In this document: positions 56,847-64,000 of the stretch, piece after piece
Numbering within the stretch: the first letter of the stretch is position 1
Layout of the letters: every line of letters begins with the position of its first letter
IMG/VR virus record: IMGVR_UViG_3300028840_002431
Location: 352,540 to 416,539 of that record
Length of the DNA stretch: 64,000 nt
Strand: one strand, 5' to 3'
Program-made: the position numbers and the translations under genes
The notes under the pieces: generated by a model
The model's database searches: none
What the model saw: the letters and a program-made list of their open reading frames with translations, nothing else
What the model was told of the DNA's origin: nothing

Positions 56847-57749
56847 TTATGGAGGGCCTTCTAACAAATTCACGAACTTGTCGATGCAACGCCCCATGGA
56901 ATAGCGGGTCTCCACCCACTCTCTGCACCAAGCCGGGTCTTTAGGCTTTATGGCCCCCAACTCCTCAAAGGTGTTCCAGAGGCACTCTCTGGGCCATATG
57001 GTGTCGGCCCCTGGCCACGCATGGACGAGAGGAGTCAAGCCCATTGCCATAGCTTCCGCGACCCCCATGCCGAAGCTCTCAGTCACGCTCGTGGATATGA
57101 TAAAACGCTTACCCCTCAAGAACTCCTCGGTCCGCACCCACCCGAAATACCTAACATTAGGCAGTTCCAGATCTCGAAAATATAGCTCTATCTCCTCGTC
57201 CTGGAATGTCCCTCCGACATGAAATTGCCGGTCCGCTAACGAGGCCATTACCGCCCGCAAGAGGGCTGGACCCTTTTTCTTGTTCAGATAGCCGACGTAG
57301 GCGACGGTGCTGTCGTCCATAGACGCCTCGTCCTGAAGCTGAAACTTCGTGAGATCAACACCGTTCGGGATAAGATGTAATCTCACCTCAGGGCACAACT
57401 TGGCCATCTTGGCCCCCACGATCTCCTCGAATTTGGGAGACACCACGATCAGATCCGACACGTTAGGCCAAAAAACCCTCTTTAAATACTGATCCTGAGC
57501 CTCGTAACGGTGCAACCGGACAATGAGTCTTGGTTTTTTAGGTAGCTCCCCTAGCCTCTTGGACAAAACGACGGCGTTCTCGTCGCAGAAATCAACGAAT
57601 ATAACGTCCGGGCACAAAGTCTTGACATACTTCCACATATATTCGTTTTGGACGTGCTGTTCCCGATAGACGCTGTGGCCCTGTAGCCTCTCTGCGAGAT
57701 AAGGAGCCAGAGAGAAATTGGGTGTGATTTCGACAACGAGAAGCTTCAT
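56847..57749 (-). CDS. Glycosyltransferase, GT-B fold, family 4-like
   Basis: IPNGVDL, YVGYLNKKKG and ESFGMGVAEAMAMG motifs; start at ATG 57749 (ATGA overlap). Confidence 0.85.
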   Translation of the reverse strand: MKLLVVEITPNFSLAPYLAERLQGHSVYREQHVQNEYMWKYVKTLCPDVIFVDFCDENAVVLSKRLGELPKKPRLIVRLHRYEAQDQYLKRVFWPNVSDLIVVSPKFEEIVGAKMAKLCPEVRLHLIPNGVDLTKFQLQDEASMDDSTVAYVGYLNKKKGPALLRAVMASLADRQFHVGGTFQDEEIELYFRDLELPNVRYFGWVRTEEFLRGKRFIISTSVTESFGMGVAEAMAMGLTPLVHAWPGADTIWPRECLWNTFEELGAIKPKDPAWCREWVETRYSMGRCIDKFVNLLEGPP

Positions 57750-58246
57750 CGCCACCCCAAAATATGCTTCCGGCCTTCCCTGCCAGAGACTACAGAGGCG
57801 TGTTTGAAGTCCTCTTGGGTCCACCTGGAAATGTGAGCTTCATGCTTGTTTCCGTGGCAAGCGCCCTGCCCGCTCCAGTACGCCGGGGTCGAGACAATGT
57901 AATGTTTCTTCACACCCTCCAACAATTTCTTACCGTCTTCTCGACTCAGATGCTCGATAATATCGACGAGCAAGATCAGATCATACCCCTCGAACGTGGG
58001 CAGAAGTTCCATGACATTCTGGTAGAAAACACGCCGGTAGACGCAGTCATGGACCGGGGATTTGTAGTTTTCAAAAACCTCAACCCCATCCACGATCGGC
58101 GTGAACCCCTTCCAGTATTTTAAATACTCAACACACAGGACACCCCACTTACCGTACCCGGCCCCCACATCCAAAATGGTCCGGGGACACATCTCCATCA
58201 CCTTGTAGACAATGTCCGATATCACTTCCGGCCGACAACTAGGCAT
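57746..58246 (-). CDS. Class I SAM-dependent methyltransferase
   Basis: ILDVGAGYGKWG motif I; YDLILLVDIIEHL. Confidence 0.85.
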   Translation of the reverse strand: MPSCRPEVISDIVYKVMEMCPRTILDVGAGYGKWGVLCVEYLKYWKGFTPIVDGVEVFENYKSPVHDCVYRRVFYQNVMELLPTFEGYDLILLVDIIEHLSREDGKKLLEGVKKHYIVSTPAYWSGQGACHGNKHEAHISRWTQEDFKHASVVSGREGRKHILGWR

Positions 58247-58247
58247 C

Positions 58248-61034: not shown

Positions 61035-62057
61035 TTATACCGTAGTCGCCCGCGAAATAAGCATGGACCAGACGACTTGCCGGTCCGAACCTGTCGCGCC
61101 TCTGTGTATAACCGCCTTGGTCTTCCACTGAGGCAAGACAGTGGCCGGGATATTGTCATAAACGGTCAGGTCGTCGTGGCCTTCCCCAGACATCCACAAC
61201 TTTCGCACGTACGTCGTCAGATCAAGAGACACGTCGAACAAGTTGTGCGTGCCGGTTCCCGGTGTGTACGTCAGAACACCGGTAGCTGCCACATACGTGA
61301 AAAAGCCGTCATTGTTTGACGCCGGTACCGGAACGGCTTTCGTGAAGCTCACATTCGCGTTTAGCGTTTCTTCAAGGTCTATATCCCAGTTAGGGCCATC
61401 AGAACCTGGGGTGCCTGGAGCTACAATCATGTTCGCACCGCCGCCAATACCTAGCTTGGCGTAAGCGCCTGAGCCGGTGTTCTCCACAATGTTCGAGGTG
61501 GCTGGAGCATAGATCGTCAAGTTAGCATAATCACCGTACTCACATCCGTTCCAATGGATACAACCGCCTCCAAGACGCACAGGATGGATATACTGAGACT
61601 CGACTGTGGTGTCGCCCTCTGCGGTCAACTCCGCCCTAAACTCTGTACCCCCGCCAACATTGCCGCCCGTAACATCGTCACCCTCCCCACACCAAACGAC
61701 GTACTGCTCGATGGGCCATGTGTTTGCGGCTACAACGGGAGTGTCCCCCTCAACACTCGGACCATTCAGATGAACGAGAGGAACGCCGTCGGCTGTGACT
61801 GGGTCAGGGAGAGGCTCGCCGGAAGTATTACCAATCAAGCCGCCACAAGGATCGGTAGTATCTCCATCCAAGACAGTCTTGTCAGCGGCGGGTAAAGAGT
61901 TCTTAAAAACAACACCTAACACGTCACCCGTGATGTCGATCCTGTCGAGAGCGATCGTGATGGCGCTCTCTTGGATTTCCTGCGTCAGCCTGGGAGCGTC
62001 GCACTTACCGGCTACAATGTCGTCCGCGATAGAATATGTGTAAGTGGTTTCGGCCAT
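61035..62057 (-). CDS. Putative fibre/appendage-associated protein
   Basis: The N-terminal ~70 aa are paralogous to those of 62057-62644; beta-rich remainder. Confidence 0.55.
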   Translation of the reverse strand: MAETTYTYSIADDIVAGKCDAPRLTQEIQESAITIALDRIDITGDVLGVVFKNSLPAADKTVLDGDTTDPCGGLIGNTSGEPLPDPVTADGVPLVHLNGPSVEGDTPVVAANTWPIEQYVVWCGEGDDVTGGNVGGGTEFRAELTAEGDTTVESQYIHPVRLGGGCIHWNGCEYGDYANLTIYAPATSNIVENTGSGAYAKLGIGGGANMIVAPGTPGSDGPNWDIDLEETLNANVSFTKAVPVPASNNDGFFTYVAATGVLTYTPGTGTHNLFDVSLDLTTYVRKLWMSGEGHDDLTVYDNIPATVLPQWKTKAVIHRGATGSDRQVVWSMLISRATTV

Positions 62058-62644
62058 CAGATCCTCTTCATCAACGAAACACTAGCCCTGCGAATACAAG
62101 CCGCGCCTTGCTTCCCCTGAGCTTTGAACTGTAACTTGATATGTGGTGTGTCGCCTGTGTTAAAATCGATGAACGCTTCCCCGCTGCAATAACGCCATCG
62201 ATTTTTGATCCAATTATCACAACAGTACTCGATTCCATCAACTTCAATTCGGGTCTCAACTCTTGTGGCACTACTATTTGACGTTTTTACTTCATAACTC
62301 CATGCGACTCGATAAGCGCCATCGATTAAGGGATCGAGAGTTGCGTCTATTTTATCCCGGTATTCTGTAGTAGTGCTTATACTCTCCGCTTCATCCGTAA
62401 CAGTCTGAGGGGTATCAGAAACATCCGTACCTTGATGCGCCGCTACAAGGCCGTCCAGTATAGTTTGATCACCACCGCTAAGGGCGTCGTCGAACCAAAT
62501 GTCGCACACGTCCCCAGTGGTAAAGATATAGTACAAAGCAGTGACGATAGCAGAACCATCAATCTCTTTAGAGAGTAGGGTGCTGTTGACCTTCTGGTTC
62601 GGAAAGTCCTCACTAATACTATAAGTATACTTGGTAGCGGCCAT
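62057..62644 (-). CDS. Putative fibre-associated protein (shared N-terminal anchor plus jelly-roll-like C-domain)
   Basis: [13 protein letters not shown]...GDVCDIWFDDALSGGDQTILDG versus MAETTYTYSIADD...GDVLGVVFKNSLPAADKTVLDG. Confidence 0.55.
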   Translation of the reverse strand: MAATKYTYSISEDFPNQKVNSTLLSKEIDGSAIVTALYYIFTTGDVCDIWFDDALSGGDQTILDGLVAAHQGTDVSDTPQTVTDEAESISTTTEYRDKIDATLDPLIDGAYRVAWSYEVKTSNSSATRVETRIEVDGIEYCCDNWIKNRWRYCSGEAFIDFNTGDTPHIKLQFKAQGKQGAACIRRASVSLMKRI

Positions 62645-64000
62645 TAGACATCAACCTCGTGAACCAAGATGGAACAATGCTCGTAGGCCACAGTCACCGG
62701 ACGGATTGATCCTGTGTCAGACTCTACCAACCATTGAACCTTTATCGTTCTACTCCCCGACGCGAGTCCCGTTGCCTTATAAACAAGAGCGCCAGTATTC
62801 CCTTCGGCGTTCTTGCCTTGTAACCCAAAACCGCGTTTAGCGGAACCGTCAATGACCAACTGGAACCGCATGAATCTGTCATTGTTGTCAATGGACCCGC
62901 ACACCGACACGAATATATCTAGATCTGATCCCGCGCTGGCTTTGGTATACGCAAGTGAGAGTAAATCGGTAAAAGTAGTCGAGGTTGTGGTTGTATCAGA
63001 GGTAATCTCGGTGAAGCCGGTCTTTGTCAAACCCCCTGACGGTCCAGTCGGACCAGTGGCCCCAACGACACCTTCCAGCCTAGCGACCATGAAGGTGCTT
63101 TCTGGGATCATCACATTGCCGTCACCGTTCGCCTGTAGCTGAAGGGTCAGATACTCACCGGAAGATAACGAAACAGGGACGATATTCGACACAGCGTTAG
63201 TTTCGTCATCTTCGCTTATCTGCCTTACGCTTTGGGGAATAACAGTTGAGTCGTCTATCCGAACGCGAGCGTCAATAACTTCCTCACCAGCGTCAAAGTC
63301 TATGGATAACGAAAAGGCTACGAGATATACGCCGTCGGCTTTGACTTGAATTCTGTCTGTATTTACCGAGTCGTGTTCTAGAACCGAACTCTCATTCTCG
63401 AAGTCCGTCGTATCCCATGTAACGTCACCGTACGACCCGTTGGGTATAGAGAAGTTCGTAGTACGTCGAACCGACACGGCAGCAAGTGAGTCTATAACCC
63501 CTGGACCTGTCGGCCCTGTGGCTCCAGTCGGTCCCGTTGCTCCGGTAGGACCGGTGGGACCGGTTCCGCCCGTGGGACCTGTTGGACCAGGAGTAGTCGG
63601 TCCGGTTGCTCCGGTCGCTCCAGTGGCTCCGGTCGCTCCTGTTGCTCCTGTTGCTCCGGTGGCTCCGGTTGCACCTGTCGCTCCGGTCGCTCCGGTTGAT
63701 CCGGTTGCGCCTGTAGGTCCTGTCGATCCGGTGTTACCTGTGGGTCCTGTGTTGCCGGTGGCTCCTGTTGGTCCGGTTGCACCTGTCGCTCCGGTTGATC
63801 CAGTTGCTCCGGTGTTGCCAGTGGGACCGGTAGCGCCCGTGGCTCCGGTCGCTCCTGTTGCTCCGGTCGCTCCTGTTGCTCCGGTGGCTCCTGTTGCTCC
63901 GGTTGCACCTGTCGCTCCGGTTGATCCGGTTGCGCCTGTAGGTCCTGTCGATCCGGTGTTACCTGTGGGTCCTGTGTTGCCCGTGGCTCCGGTCGCTCCT
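62644..64000 (-). CDS. Partial collagen-like fibre protein (start beyond the right edge): (Gly-X-Thr)n, C1q/TNF-like domain, short collagen, C-terminal beta domain
   Basis: The frame of the tracked 62644-63477 ORF stays open to 63999 through about 55 G-X-T triplets. [17 protein letters not shown]...[11 protein letters not shown] is C1q-like. Confidence 0.9.
63499..64000 (-). repeat. Collagen-like GAT/GPT/GST/GNT triplet repeat
   Basis: Direct translation shows Thr at nearly every Y position, one 2-residue break (GPT-TP-GPT), and an identical 71-bp segment at 63686-63756 and 63911-63981. Confidence 0.95.

Follow-up and report, generated by a model that had tools for sequence, protein, structure and literature searches.

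A phage gene unit proposed to O-glycosylate a Gly-X-Thr collagen fibre and to tailor the glycan with methyl and sulfate groups

The DNA analysed here (the window) comprises 64,000 nucleotides, positions 352,540 to 416,539 of IMG/VR record IMGVR_UViG_3300028840_002431, and ends where the 416,539-bp contig ends. The source, a 416-kb phage, was recovered from sediment and seawater and carries collagen and enzymes in a single gene unit. Between 56847 and 64000, a collagen gene, two fibre proteins and five coupled enzyme genes are all encoded on the minus strand (Table 1). These eight genes run from collagen to GT4 with adjoining start and stop codons that overlap or nearly touch (the p195 start overlaps the collagen stop, TAATG; further junctions are GTGA, an 8-nt overlap, a 1-nt gap and ATGA). 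A terminator-like hairpin 20 nt past the GT4 stop closes the unit, and the next gene follows after a 100-nt gap. A GT4 start at GTG 57824 was set aside, as relatives align only from residue 26 on; the ATG at 57749, overlapping the upstream stop (ATGA), is most likely the start. The same sequence was found for 58001-63631 in three separate metagenome runs (~12x depth), with the assembly break located inside the last collagen tract in all three assemblies.

Table 1 Features of the collagen and enzyme unit (window positions).
Feature	Position	Strand	Evidence
Last long Gly-X-Thr collagen tract	63478..64000	-	Translation; Pfam Collagen E 1e-20; truncated by contig end
TNF/C1q-fold jelly-roll domain	63019..63477	-	AF2 pLDDT 94.9; Foldseek
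Short linker and C-terminal cap, TNF-like jelly roll	62644..63078	-	AF2 pLDDT 91.5; Foldseek
p195, 195-aa fibre-associated protein	62057..62644	-	Conserved N-terminal domain of ~75 aa
p340, 340-aa protein	61035..62057	-	p195-like N-terminal domain, differing C-terminal part
GT2-GT2-TPR glycosyltransferase, 526 aa	59436..61016	-	Pfam Glycos_transf_2 E 6e-29 (two stretches) and TPR_19
Compact PAPS-type sulfotransferase, 203 aa	58828..59439	-	Pfam Sulfotransfer_1, 25.6 bits (cut-off 22)
MT195, class I SAM methyltransferase, 195 aa	58248..58835	-	Pfam Methyltransf_25 / Methyltransf_11, 29.9 / 27.8 bits, both over cut-off
MT166, second class I SAM methyltransferase, 166 aa	57746..58246	-	Motif I ILDVGAGYG and DIIEH motif; weak Pfam Methyltransf_23
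GT4 (GT-B fold) glycosyltransferase	56847..57749	-	Pfam Glyco_trans_1_4 E 1e-10; EX7E motif ESFGMGVAE
Terminator-like hairpin	56811..56827	-	7 pairs, 5 of them G-C; T-run tail TTGGTTTTTC; consensus match only

The earlier note had placed the enzymes within a virion operon, two genes away from the collagen, in a window that lacks donor-synthesis genes, and each of these points was borne out. The two intervening genes are p195 and p340. Neighbouring genes encode fibre proteins, with two Gp80 chain-fibre proteins (Gp80: PMC13730344) downstream of the unit here; in L006 and L010, genes for tail sheath, gp19 tube and Phi812 tail tube take this downstream position. A Pfam scan of 50 window ORFs (nearly all those of at least 120 aa, excluding ORFs antisense inside a longer ORF) revealed no nucleotide-sugar or PAPS synthesis domain. 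We propose that the eight genes form one late virion-fibre expression unit, a proposal that we consider probable jointly with the overall explanation developed below.

The collagen frame (62644-63999), with unbroken G-X-T triplets, runs past the window end. As first noted, Thr occupies almost every Y position: 54/55 triplets in the window part (L001), and 175/189 in a longer copy on a 100% identical 55.9-kb contig (L002). The latter adds at least 720 aa upstream and gives an ORF of 1171 aa or more, with the 5' end still open. X positions are mostly Ala, Pro, Ser or Asn. Thr is the commonest Y residue of prokaryotic collagens generally (PMC8968730); among homologous fibre proteins, only 1/32 of the collagen-bearing ones is GXT-type. 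The C1q-like cap reported earlier was confirmed, both globular domains being predicted as TNF/C1q jelly rolls. Foldseek matches for the domain adjoining the last tract (TM 0.6-0.78) include the phi812 spike knob, 4-1BBL, B. anthracis BxpB/ExsFA, the F-BclA C-terminal domain, EDA and C1QL3, while those for the C-terminal cap include the BC2L-C N-terminal lectin, the Pgp3 C-terminal domain, EDA-A1 and C1QL3. Along the fibre, several collagen tracts follow one another, with TNF-like domains recurring between them.

This arrangement resembles Bacillus anthracis/cereus BclA, in which a Thr-rich collagen stalk carries a trimeric TNF/C1q-fold domain. The BclA glycan includes O-methylated sugars; we know of no sulfation of BclA. 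The label 'BclA-type' holds for fold and logic and fails otherwise: the phage fibre has no match to Pfam BclA_C, lacks an exosporium-targeting N-terminus and forms a multi-tract string rather than a single stalk and head. Furthermore, the genes for the phage enzymes accompany that of the fibre. In BclA, the collagen region carries O-glycans (PMC8968730).

The p195 N-terminal domain recurs in p340 and in the gene upstream of the enzyme cassette in L003, L004, L006, L008 and L013, and likewise in L102. Orthologues of p340 (67-73% identity) occupy the equivalent position in L003 and L013. We take p340 to be a probable distal fibre or tip protein; it has no Pfam or PHROG match, and hypothetical proteins of viruses are its neighbours in the Atlas.

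The enzyme block comprises GT2-GT2-TPR, a PAPS-type sulfotransferase, two SAM methyltransferases and GT4, with three glycosyltransferase domains on two genes. Pfam matches, motifs and junctions confirm the coupled five-gene block described previously, the catalytic motifs being intact in all members. None of the five enzymes contains a 19-residue window above 1.25 in Kyte-Doolittle hydrophobicity, suggesting they are probably soluble. The closest solved structures to GT2-GT2-TPR in the PDB are GmaR (E 6e-25) and SunS (E 1e-15), and at E <1e-10 the solved relatives are GmaR, SunS and a ThuS-like enzyme only. The match to NCBIfam SunS (E 1.4e-18, 67 bits) is below the cut-off of 350. The DTGSxD and DAD motifs are invariant (alignment A5). 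The second GT2 and the TPR region constitute an SgtA/GmaR/SunS-like module that is likely to act as the initiating protein O-glycosyltransferase. When protein-modifying and DNA-modifying families were compared, as the earlier note had advised, GT2-TPR grouped with protein/peptide glycosyltransferases (GmaR, SunS) and not with DNA or LPS modifiers.

The sulfotransferase family displays an invariant SH(K)RSGTH 5'-PSB loop and YIVRxP..S 3'-PB motif, and the family-invariant His70 aligns with the catalytic His of cytosolic SULTs. Its clade is small and unnamed, with no members among 50,697 deposited phage genomes. Wherever a lineage has the sulfotransferase, an MT166 orthologue lies 3' of it, with MT195 between them here and in L013. 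Orthologues share 62-63% identity for MT195 (L003, L013) and 40-72% for MT166 (L006, L008, L010, L013); the L003 homologue of MT166 matches Methyltransf_11.

The enzyme and collagen block is a real module. The set of GT2-TPR, sulfotransferase, MT166 and GT4 recurs in five phage lineages (sulfotransferase identity 42-67%), and gene fusions tie its parts to one pathway: sulfotransferase-methyltransferase in L013, GT4-GT2-TPR in L008 and sulfotransferase-TPR in P0296 and P0327. A GXT collagen lies upstream in all close relatives with GT2-GT2-TPR. Among IMG/VR GT2-TPR loci of at least 10 kb, collagen tracts occur within 10 kb in 37/58 (64%), 26 of the 37 being GXT-type, compared to 2/43 (5%) and 0/43, respectively, for Gp80-fibre control loci (Fisher p = 3e-10; 33/53 clusters versus 2/21 after dereplication), counts that include related contigs and define collagen by a simple regular expression. 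The nearest tract lies at a median of 1.4 kb and on the same strand in 37/40. The pairing extends to Bacillota genomes, where relatives of the phage GT2-TPR also adjoin Thr-rich collagen genes (20/62 loci, mostly adjacent). About a third of the viral loci have no collagen within 10 kb; hence this large family is not confined to collagen substrates. On a 10.7-kb contig, P0279 encodes a Thr-rich collagen fibre and no glycosyltransferase, and the L010 contig, which reaches 5.7 kb upstream of the cassette before it ends, showed no collagen tract in that stretch. Co-occurrence of block and GXT collagen, suggested earlier as a check, is therefore seen in close relatives, in other sulfotransferase lineages (four cited, L010's upstream 5.7 kb being without a tract) and across IMG/VR. 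Independence of the two had been named as the contrary outcome, and the opposite was found: megaphage relatives L102, L103, L108, L109 and L127 have retained the downstream block of fibre genes and lack both collagen and enzymes.

The nearest characterised counterpart is SgtA of Clostridioides difficile, which combines a GT-A domain with four TPRs, is encoded beside bclA3, and in vitro transfers beta-O-GlcNAc onto Thr of the GPT repeats of the BclA3 collagen (PMC7157674). The likeness is one of architecture and gene position: a GT-A (GT2) domain precedes TPRs in a soluble cytoplasmic protein region of ~300-380 aa, and the enzyme gene adjoins a collagen-like gene with Thr at Y. In contrast, the phage enzyme is fused to a second GT2, and GT4, both methyltransferases and the sulfotransferase are encoded after it; the X position is mostly filled by Ala, Pro, Ser or Asn instead of Pro, and there are several collagen tracts with several TNF-like domains. 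Among solved structures, GmaR (Listeria) and SunS (Bacillus SPbeta) match best by sequence. Caulobacter FlmG, likened by description, also pairs a catalytic part with a separate substrate-binding domain that sets specificity (PMC7591256). The substrates of these enzymes are flagellins or a bacteriocin peptide, and no sulfotransferase accompanies them. Mimivirus and chloroviruses likewise glycosylate their own collagen or structural protein with virus-encoded enzymes, and chlorovirus capsid glycans contain methylated sugars. Mimivirus L230 is a collagen hydroxylase/glycosyltransferase acting on the virus's own collagen (PMC8968730). There, however, the acceptor is hydroxylysine, the hosts are eukaryotic and the enzymes are unrelated. 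Mycobacteriophages differ in host and phage type, and to our knowledge no collagen, TPR-glycosyltransferase, methyltransferase or sulfotransferase has been reported from their glycosylation systems. They are alike in that, according to PMC12619734, phage-encoded glycosyltransferases in the structural region modify virion proteins.

Taken with the virion context, family relations and collagen co-occurrence favour the earlier reading of a methylated, sulfated glycan on the collagen fibre, with collagen Thr as the acceptor we infer. We consider O-glycosylation of the fibre with methyl and sulfate tailoring to be the probable function of the module. The enzymes might instead glycosylate other virion proteins of the unit (p195, p340, the TNF-like domains or further Ser/Thr-rich structural proteins), which we regard as unlikely. 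A p195-type N-domain protein lies directly 5' of the cassette in all lineages but L010, which itself has a cassette and no collagen in the available upstream sequence, and the mycobacteriophage acceptors are capsid and tail-tube subunit C-termini (Freeman et al. 2023, as cited in PMC12619734). Yet L102 retains p195-type and TNF-like proteins with neither collagen nor glycosyltransferase, the family-wide association is with collagen tracts, mostly <1.5 kb away, and SgtA modifies collagen-repeat Thr. Somewhat less likely again is that the glycosyltransferases act on the fibre and the sulfotransferase modifies protein Tyr/Ser/Thr, a small molecule or a host component. Its sequence holds no acceptor-defining feature, its closest solved relatives are cytosolic small-molecule sulfotransferases (only E 8e-8), and the fusions to TPR suggest protein-directed members. 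Against this, the gene always sits between those of glycosyltransferases and methyltransferases, with codon overlap at the junctions; in L013 it forms a fusion with a methyltransferase, and it is missing from the otherwise simpler cassettes of L003 and L004, as would fit an optional tailoring step.

Modification of a host envelope glycan (LPS, capsule, S-layer glycan or EPS), blocking superinfection or freeing progeny as in serotype-converting phages, appears improbable. Such enzyme sets are typical of polysaccharide loci, weak NCBIfam matches to EpsD, EpsE and LPS galactosyltransferase were found, and PHROGs categorises the glycosyltransferases as 'moron/host takeover'; the block, however, contains no flippase, polymerase, priming phosphoglycosyltransferase or membrane segment, its TPR-bearing enzyme is closest to protein glycosyltransferases, and it is translationally coupled to fibre genes and gained or lost with collagen. 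Hypermodification of phage DNA or synthesis of a SunS-type glycocin is least credible of all and very improbable. We know of no DNA glycosylation system featuring a TPR domain or a sulfotransferase, which counts against a DNA target. DNA glycosylation is frequent among phage glycosyltransferases (PMC12619734), but base-modification genes were not found nearby. SunS is a peptide S-glycosyltransferase of the SPbeta prophage; the SunS score nevertheless falls far below its cut-off, with neither precursor peptide nor ABC exporter present.

Under the preferred reading of collagen-fibre glycosylation, modification would occur in the cytoplasm of the infected cell, the TPR part of GT2-TPR binding unassembled Gly-X-Thr chains. 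The GT2-TPR module would start a chain by attaching a sugar to Thr hydroxyls (by analogy, a HexNAc donated by a host UDP-sugar), and the fused N-terminal GT2, together with GT4, would lengthen this chain. Capping with O-methyl and O-sulfate groups may then follow, carried out by the two methyltransferases and the PAPS-dependent sulfotransferase with SAM and PAPS from the host. The product would be a long beads-on-a-string tail or virion fibre, its collagen segments enclosed in a dense, anionic and partly methylated O-glycan coat. We know of no phage for which such a methylated and sulfated sugar chain has been described. A coat of this kind would keep a triple helix that is nearly devoid of charged or imino residues stable and hydrated, shield the fibre against proteases and alter its surface properties.

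Every gene in the right-hand third of the window lies on the minus strand. In the direction of transcription from 64000 to 56811, the collagen ORF enters from beyond the window end and is followed by two companion proteins of 195 and 340 aa (p195 and p340), a GT2-GT2-TPR glycosyltransferase, a sulfotransferase, two methyltransferases of 195 and 166 aa (MT195 and MT166), a GT4 glycosyltransferase and a hairpin. From collagen to GT4, the junctions read TAATG, then TGATG, then an 18-nt gap containing an AGAGG box, followed by GTGA, an overlap of 8 nt, a gap of 1 nt and finally ATGA; a terminator-like site lies within the 100-nt gap 3′ of GT4. 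By these overlapping or tight junctions and the terminator-like gap, the enzymes are coupled to the collagen and to both companions, and not to the fibre genes further downstream. An earlier note had placed the collagen two genes from a coupled five-enzyme block, and both the ORF order and the junctions bear this out.

The window is the terminal 64 kb of a 416,539-bp IMG/VR contig, with position 64000 at the contig end. Three separate runs, two from sediment and one from seawater, yielded contigs that match most of the unit (58001-63631) with zero differences (~12x depth), and the contigs of all three runs stop within the collagen repeat. The sequence itself is genuine; what cuts the collagen gene short is the assembly. 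In L002, a contig of 100% identity, the collagen ORF reaches at least 1171 aa, and its 5′ end is still open. Each of the three runs also yielded a short contig in which two positions of the collagen tract are bridged by 21 other letters; this is likely to be a variant of the tract in sequence or repeat number, or else an artefact of assembling the repeat. The GGN-NNN-ACN periodicity of the collagen repeat also opens long ORFs, rich in Pro/Glu/Gln or Val/Pro, in other frames and antisense; these were rejected as repeat artefacts rather than genes. A DNA search with 56050-64000 against 50,697 deposited phages returned collagen-repeat matches only, and no relative of the block.

Coordinates of features in the window and in compared viral loci (locus name given where outside the window)
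Feature	Position	Strand	Size or remark
Collagen ORF	stop at 62644	-	
Variant joined by short contigs	63538 to 63638		
Rejected ORF with 'PEQQ' repeats	63492-63908	-	
Rejected other-frame and antisense ORFs	63480-64000		
p195	62057-62644	-	
p340	61035-62057	-	
GT2-GT2-TPR protein		-	526 aa
Sulfotransferase		-	203 aa
MT195 and MT166		-	
GT4, then hairpin with T-run	3′ end of region at 56811	-	
Gp80 'fiber I' paralogue	53714-54115	-	
Gp80 'fiber I' paralogue	51464-51847	-	
Ser/Asp/Gly-repeat protein	52842-53624	-	260 aa
Ferritin/Dps-like protein	42268-42801	-	
Volactin-like protein	41135-42220	-	361 aa
UvrD-type helicase	27864-31163	-	1099 aa
SLT-domain protein	17325-19157	-	610 aa
Sulfotransferase-class I methyltransferase fusion	L013:9986-11260		424 aa
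Radical-SAM-like gene	L003:13636-14388		250 aa
Extra GT2	L003:12252-12926		224 aa
GT4-GT2-TPR fusion	L008:7867-9999		710 aa
Three tandem stand-alone TNF-like cap domains	L102:42-1278		~135 aa each
Ser/Thr low-complexity protein	L108:3-1481		>490 aa

Phage tail fibres of the collagen-like type are common. The fibre protein studied here consists of at least four collagen tracts strung between globular domains, with Thr at the Y position in 175 of 189 Gly-X-Y triplets. The X residues are mostly Ala (83), Pro (48), Ser (27) and Asn (18), leaving this Pro-poor Gly-X-Thr (GXT) helix nearly without charge. In prokaryotic collagens, Thr is in any case the residue most often found at Y (PMC8968730). 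Separate models of two globular domains were built from family alignments, as a combined alignment (A2) placed fragments of domain 1 on domain 2. The resulting models (pLDDT 94.9 and 91.5) predict both to be TNF/C1q-type jelly rolls. Structural matches of the internal domain (TM 0.6-0.78) include the phi812 spike knob, 4-1BBL, EDA, C1QL3, B. anthracis BxpB/ExsFA and the F-BclA C-terminal domain, while those of the terminal domain include the TNF-fold lectin BC2L-C-Nt, Chlamydia Pgp3 and EDA. By sequence, the terminal domain is a member of a large, widespread fibre-domain family (1124 matches), and the fibre protein has no match to Pfam BclA_C at E up to 0.01.

The C1q-like cap proposed in the earlier note is thus correct at the level of the fold. 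Its description as BclA-type holds in part: Thr-rich Gly-X-Y repeats followed by a TNF/C1q fold are present (the latter at fold level only), whereas the Pfam BclA_C domain and the spore-former context are not. BclA-family genes reside on a spore-former chromosome and encode an exosporium-targeting N-terminus, while the phage gene is located among fibre genes of a 416-kb viral contig. The likeness to BclA of the B. cereus group is a looser, functional one, and by sequence the phage fibre is no BclA-family member.

The companions p195 and p340 have a common N-terminal domain of ~75 aa and differ in their C-termini. A p195-type N-domain protein directly upstream of the enzyme cassette was seen in close relatives (L003, L004 and L013) and in unrelated lineages (L006 and L008), and L102 also has an N-domain protein. 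These proteins may act as an adaptor joining tip proteins to the fibre, or be a further glycosylation target. Neither they nor p227 and p370, two genes of the downstream fibre block, gave anything useful in Protein Atlas, PHROGs or Pfam.

All five enzymes have intact catalytic signatures, and none contains a membrane-like segment; the GT2, GT4, SAM and PAPS-binding motifs previously reported as intact were recovered in the translations and family alignments. The second GT2 plus TPR (GT2-TPR) is the informative part of the set. Its GT-A domain with metal-binding DxD matches Pfam Glycos_transf_2 (E 6e-29), and both DTGSxD and D90-A91-D92 are invariant across the 25 family members of alignment A5. 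TPRs follow straight after the catalytic domain (TPR_19, 25.7 bits against a cut-off of 25), with TPR_12 and TPR_14 also matching residues 433-499 of the full protein. In C. difficile SgtA, the GT-A domain spans aa 1-260 and is followed by four TPRs (aa 262-358), the presumed docking part; its gene adjoins bclA3, and in vitro Thr of GPT collagen repeats receives beta-O-GlcNAc (PMC7157674). Compared at the level of published architecture, GT2-TPR can be described as SgtA-like, given its GT-A domain with DxD, its C-terminal TPRs and the neighbouring gene for a collagen with Thr at Y.

The GT4 gene product is a predicted retaining GT4 enzyme, with a GT-B C-terminal domain (Glyco_trans_1_4, 42.4 bits against a cut-off of 27) and the EX7E motif ESFGMGVAE in its translation. 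Both methyltransferases are predicted to be class I SAM-dependent enzymes. MT195 has motif I VLDLGCGDG and exceeds the Pfam cut-off for Methyltransf_25 and Methyltransf_11. MT166 has motif I ILDVGAGYG and is below the Pfam cut-off (18.8 vs 27); its homologues reach 24.0 bits for Methyltransf_11 (cut-off 21.2) in L003 and exceed the cut-off for Methyltransf_23 in L004. Donor-synthesis genes were not found among the 50 ORFs scanned within the 64 kb, in line with the earlier statement that nucleotide-sugar and PAPS synthesis genes are missing from the window.

The sulfotransferase 5′-PSB loop, S12 H13 (K14) R15 S16 G17 T18 H19, is invariant or nearly so in 20 members and aligns to the SYPKSGTHW motif of PDB 5x2b. 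Residues Y81, I82, R84, P86 and S92 of the 3′-PB motif YIVRxP..S are invariant, as is H70, which aligns with the catalytic His of the 5x2b THL motif (cytosolic sulfotransferases). The Pfam Sulfotransfer_1 score exceeds the cut-off by a small margin (25.6 bits vs 22), and a profile search against the PDB gave E 8e-8. Both phosphate motifs, the His and the Pfam score point to a PAPS-type sulfotransferase, with a sugar hydroxyl as putative acceptor. The family is compact (~200 aa vs ~280 aa in cellular relatives) and small: among 5.8 billion proteins, 21 members were found by single-sequence search and ~55 by profile. No member carries a functional name, labels being 'hypothetical protein' or, for a fusion of sulfotransferase and TPR (P0296), 'TPR repeat protein'. 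Next, after a gap, are marine Rhodobacterales 'sulfotransferase domain' proteins (E ~1e-9), and tblastn against the 50,697 deposited phage genomes yielded no relative. A full-text literature search, with most subscription journals outside its coverage, found no paper on a phage sulfotransferase, no sulfated phage virion glycan and no GT-TPR paired with a phage collagen fibre.

To follow the link between GT2-TPR and collagen across the family, we took the best 80 GT2-TPR matches in IMG/VR and considered the 58 loci among them that span at least 10 kb. Collagen tracts, defined by a simple pattern, lie within 10 kb of GT2-TPR in 37 of these partly related contigs (64%), and GXT-type tracts in 26 (45%). 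The nearest tract is located at a median distance of 1.4 kb, on the same strand in 37/40 cases and upstream in 28/40. Control loci, fetched by the neighbouring Gp80 fibre gene of the structural module, have collagen in 2/43 cases (5%) and GXT-type collagen in 0/43 (Fisher p = 3e-10); with related loci clustered, the figures are 33/53 for GT2-TPR vs 2/21 for the control. The co-occurrence of the block with GXT collagens that the earlier note proposed to check is seen in relatives. Since the GXT type is rare among collagen-bearing homologues of the fibre's TNF-like domain (1/32), Thr-rich tracts are enriched near GT2-TPR. Bacterial GT2-TPR relatives (at most 38% identical, mostly Bacillota) display the same collagen adjacency in 20/62 loci. 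About a third of the GT2-TPR loci have no collagen nearby. A spot check of fibre homologues showed no glycosyltransferase with the Thr-poor P0261 and P0177, and none on the 10.7-kb contig of the Thr-rich P0279; the contig of P0147 was too short to count. This check carries little information and leans slightly against the link. Tunturiibacter phage Tunturi_5 was rejected as support: its distantly related GT2-TPR lies 4-5 kb away from a collagen tail fibre gene, among replication genes of the opposite strand.

Cassette content differs among close relatives. A 398-kb contig (L013) has the gene order of the window, with a sulfotransferase 67% identical and fused to a further methyltransferase, bringing its cassette to three. 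In L003, collagen and GT2-GT2-TPR are followed by MT195, an extra GT2, an MT166-like gene, a radical-SAM-like gene (weak match, E 8e-5) and GT4, with the sulfotransferase absent. L004 starts at the end of a GXT collagen tract, then has GT2-GT2-TPR and one methyltransferase only. Content thus varies like a glycan serotype locus, from one GT and one methyltransferase, through added GT2, radical-SAM-like and GT4 genes, to a sulfotransferase with up to three methyltransferases. Five members of the same megaphage group (L102, L103, L108, L109 and L127) keep the downstream block (p227, p131, p370, DUF5659 and Gp80) and lack collagen and all enzymes. In L102 it looks as if the fibre is reduced to its globular beads, given as tandem cap domains in the table. 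L108 encodes a nearly pure Ser/Thr protein upstream of the conserved fibre block; a glycosyltransferase was not seen within that locus.

Three further phage types were found via the sulfotransferase: one of 195 kb (L006/L014), where tail sheath and gp19 tube lie downstream, one of 84-97 kb (L008/L016) and one of 25 kb with a Phi812-type tail tube (L010). GT2-TPR, sulfotransferase, MT166 and GT4 are clustered in each. The cluster is directly downstream of GXT collagens and a p195-type N-domain protein in L006 and L008, and in L010 no collagen is present within the 5.7 kb available upstream of the cassette. GT4 and GT2-TPR form a single protein in L008, and two metagenomic proteins (P0296 and P0327; 338 and 344 aa) fuse sulfotransferase to TPR. 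Together with the sulfotransferase-methyltransferase fusion of L013, these fusions argue that all parts act on one product.

That product could in principle be other than the fibre. DNA hypermodification was considered as a role for the enzymes and is ranked low, as a scan of 50 window ORFs revealed no base-modification gene, including any for hydroxymethylated or otherwise activated bases. Two other readings, conversion of LPS and synthesis of a glycocin, are likewise ranked low. The only strong matches of the GT2-TPR half among solved structures modify proteins or peptides: GmaR (E 6e-25), which is the flagellin O-GlcNAc transferase of Listeria, SunS (E 1e-15) and a ThuS-like enzyme (E 1e-13); the family comparison suggested earlier hence came out as protein- or peptide-directed.

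Elsewhere in the window, a protein amid megaphage structural genes has a full-length match (E 1e-71) to Pfam Volactin, which is an archaeal actin homologue, and no PHROG or PDB sequence match. Two paralogues of podophage GP4 Gp80 'fiber I' (E 5e-34 and 3e-42, in table order) are kept as a pair in all megaphage relatives; such small proteins form chain-like tail fibres in phages GP4 and A1002 (PMC13730344). A protein of tandem ~25-aa Ser/Asp/Gly-rich repeats (...SMDGDSSVGAGA...) varies in repeat number (170-211 aa in relatives) and is possibly another O-glycosylation target. The UvrD-type helicase, the ferritin/Dps-like protein and the SLT lytic transglycosylase-domain protein, baseplate-hub-like in PHROGs, are encoded among large ORFs otherwise devoid of annotation matches.

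We favour glycosylation of the fibre. In the proposed mechanism, the unit would be expressed late in infection, and the TPR part of GT2-TPR would dock on GXT chains, unfolded or folding, with the module attaching the first sugar to Thr. The fused GT2 and GT4 would extend the chain, and the methyltransferases and sulfotransferase would cap the glycan using host SAM and PAPS. The docking step is modelled on the presumed role of the SgtA TPRs and on FlmG, whose specificity is set by a separate substrate-binding domain (PMC7591256). Taken as a whole, we consider this scheme more likely than not. It shares its working logic with SgtA/BclA3, where a GT-A plus TPR enzyme is encoded beside a collagen gene, and differs from mycobacteriophage virion glycosylation in both target and enzymes. 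Judging from the BclA literature and the tract composition, the glycan would probably hydrate and stabilise the helix, protect it from proteases and give the fibre an anionic surface. The observation made in the earlier note is confirmed and, within the reach of sequence analysis, its interpretation is supported: collagen-fibre O-glycosylation appears to have moved into phage virions, elaborated by methylation and sulfation. A broader generalisation, to which we give slightly less than an even chance, is that the Y-position Thr of collagen-like phage fibres generally carries O-glycans attached by phage SgtA-like GT2-TPR enzymes, and that one group of large environmental phages goes on to build a methylated, sulfated glycan there via a dedicated, phage-restricted mini-sulfotransferase.

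The strong genome-wide link between GT2-TPR and collagen provides a directly testable rule, and the clade of ~200-aa sulfotransferases, whose acceptor is probably a glycoprotein, would offer a new enzyme tool. The broader generalisation, if true, would give bacterial viruses their first sulfated glycoprotein and provide a prokaryotic counterpart to the glycosylated animal and giant-virus collagens. Thr glycosylation would account for the stability of the Gly-X-Thr helix and would carry over to viruses a mechanism so far shown for spore fibres only (SgtA/BclA3). The cassette differences resemble a serotype-like diversification of the glycan on the virion surface, which would affect host recognition, particle stability in sediment or seawater, and phage antigenicity.
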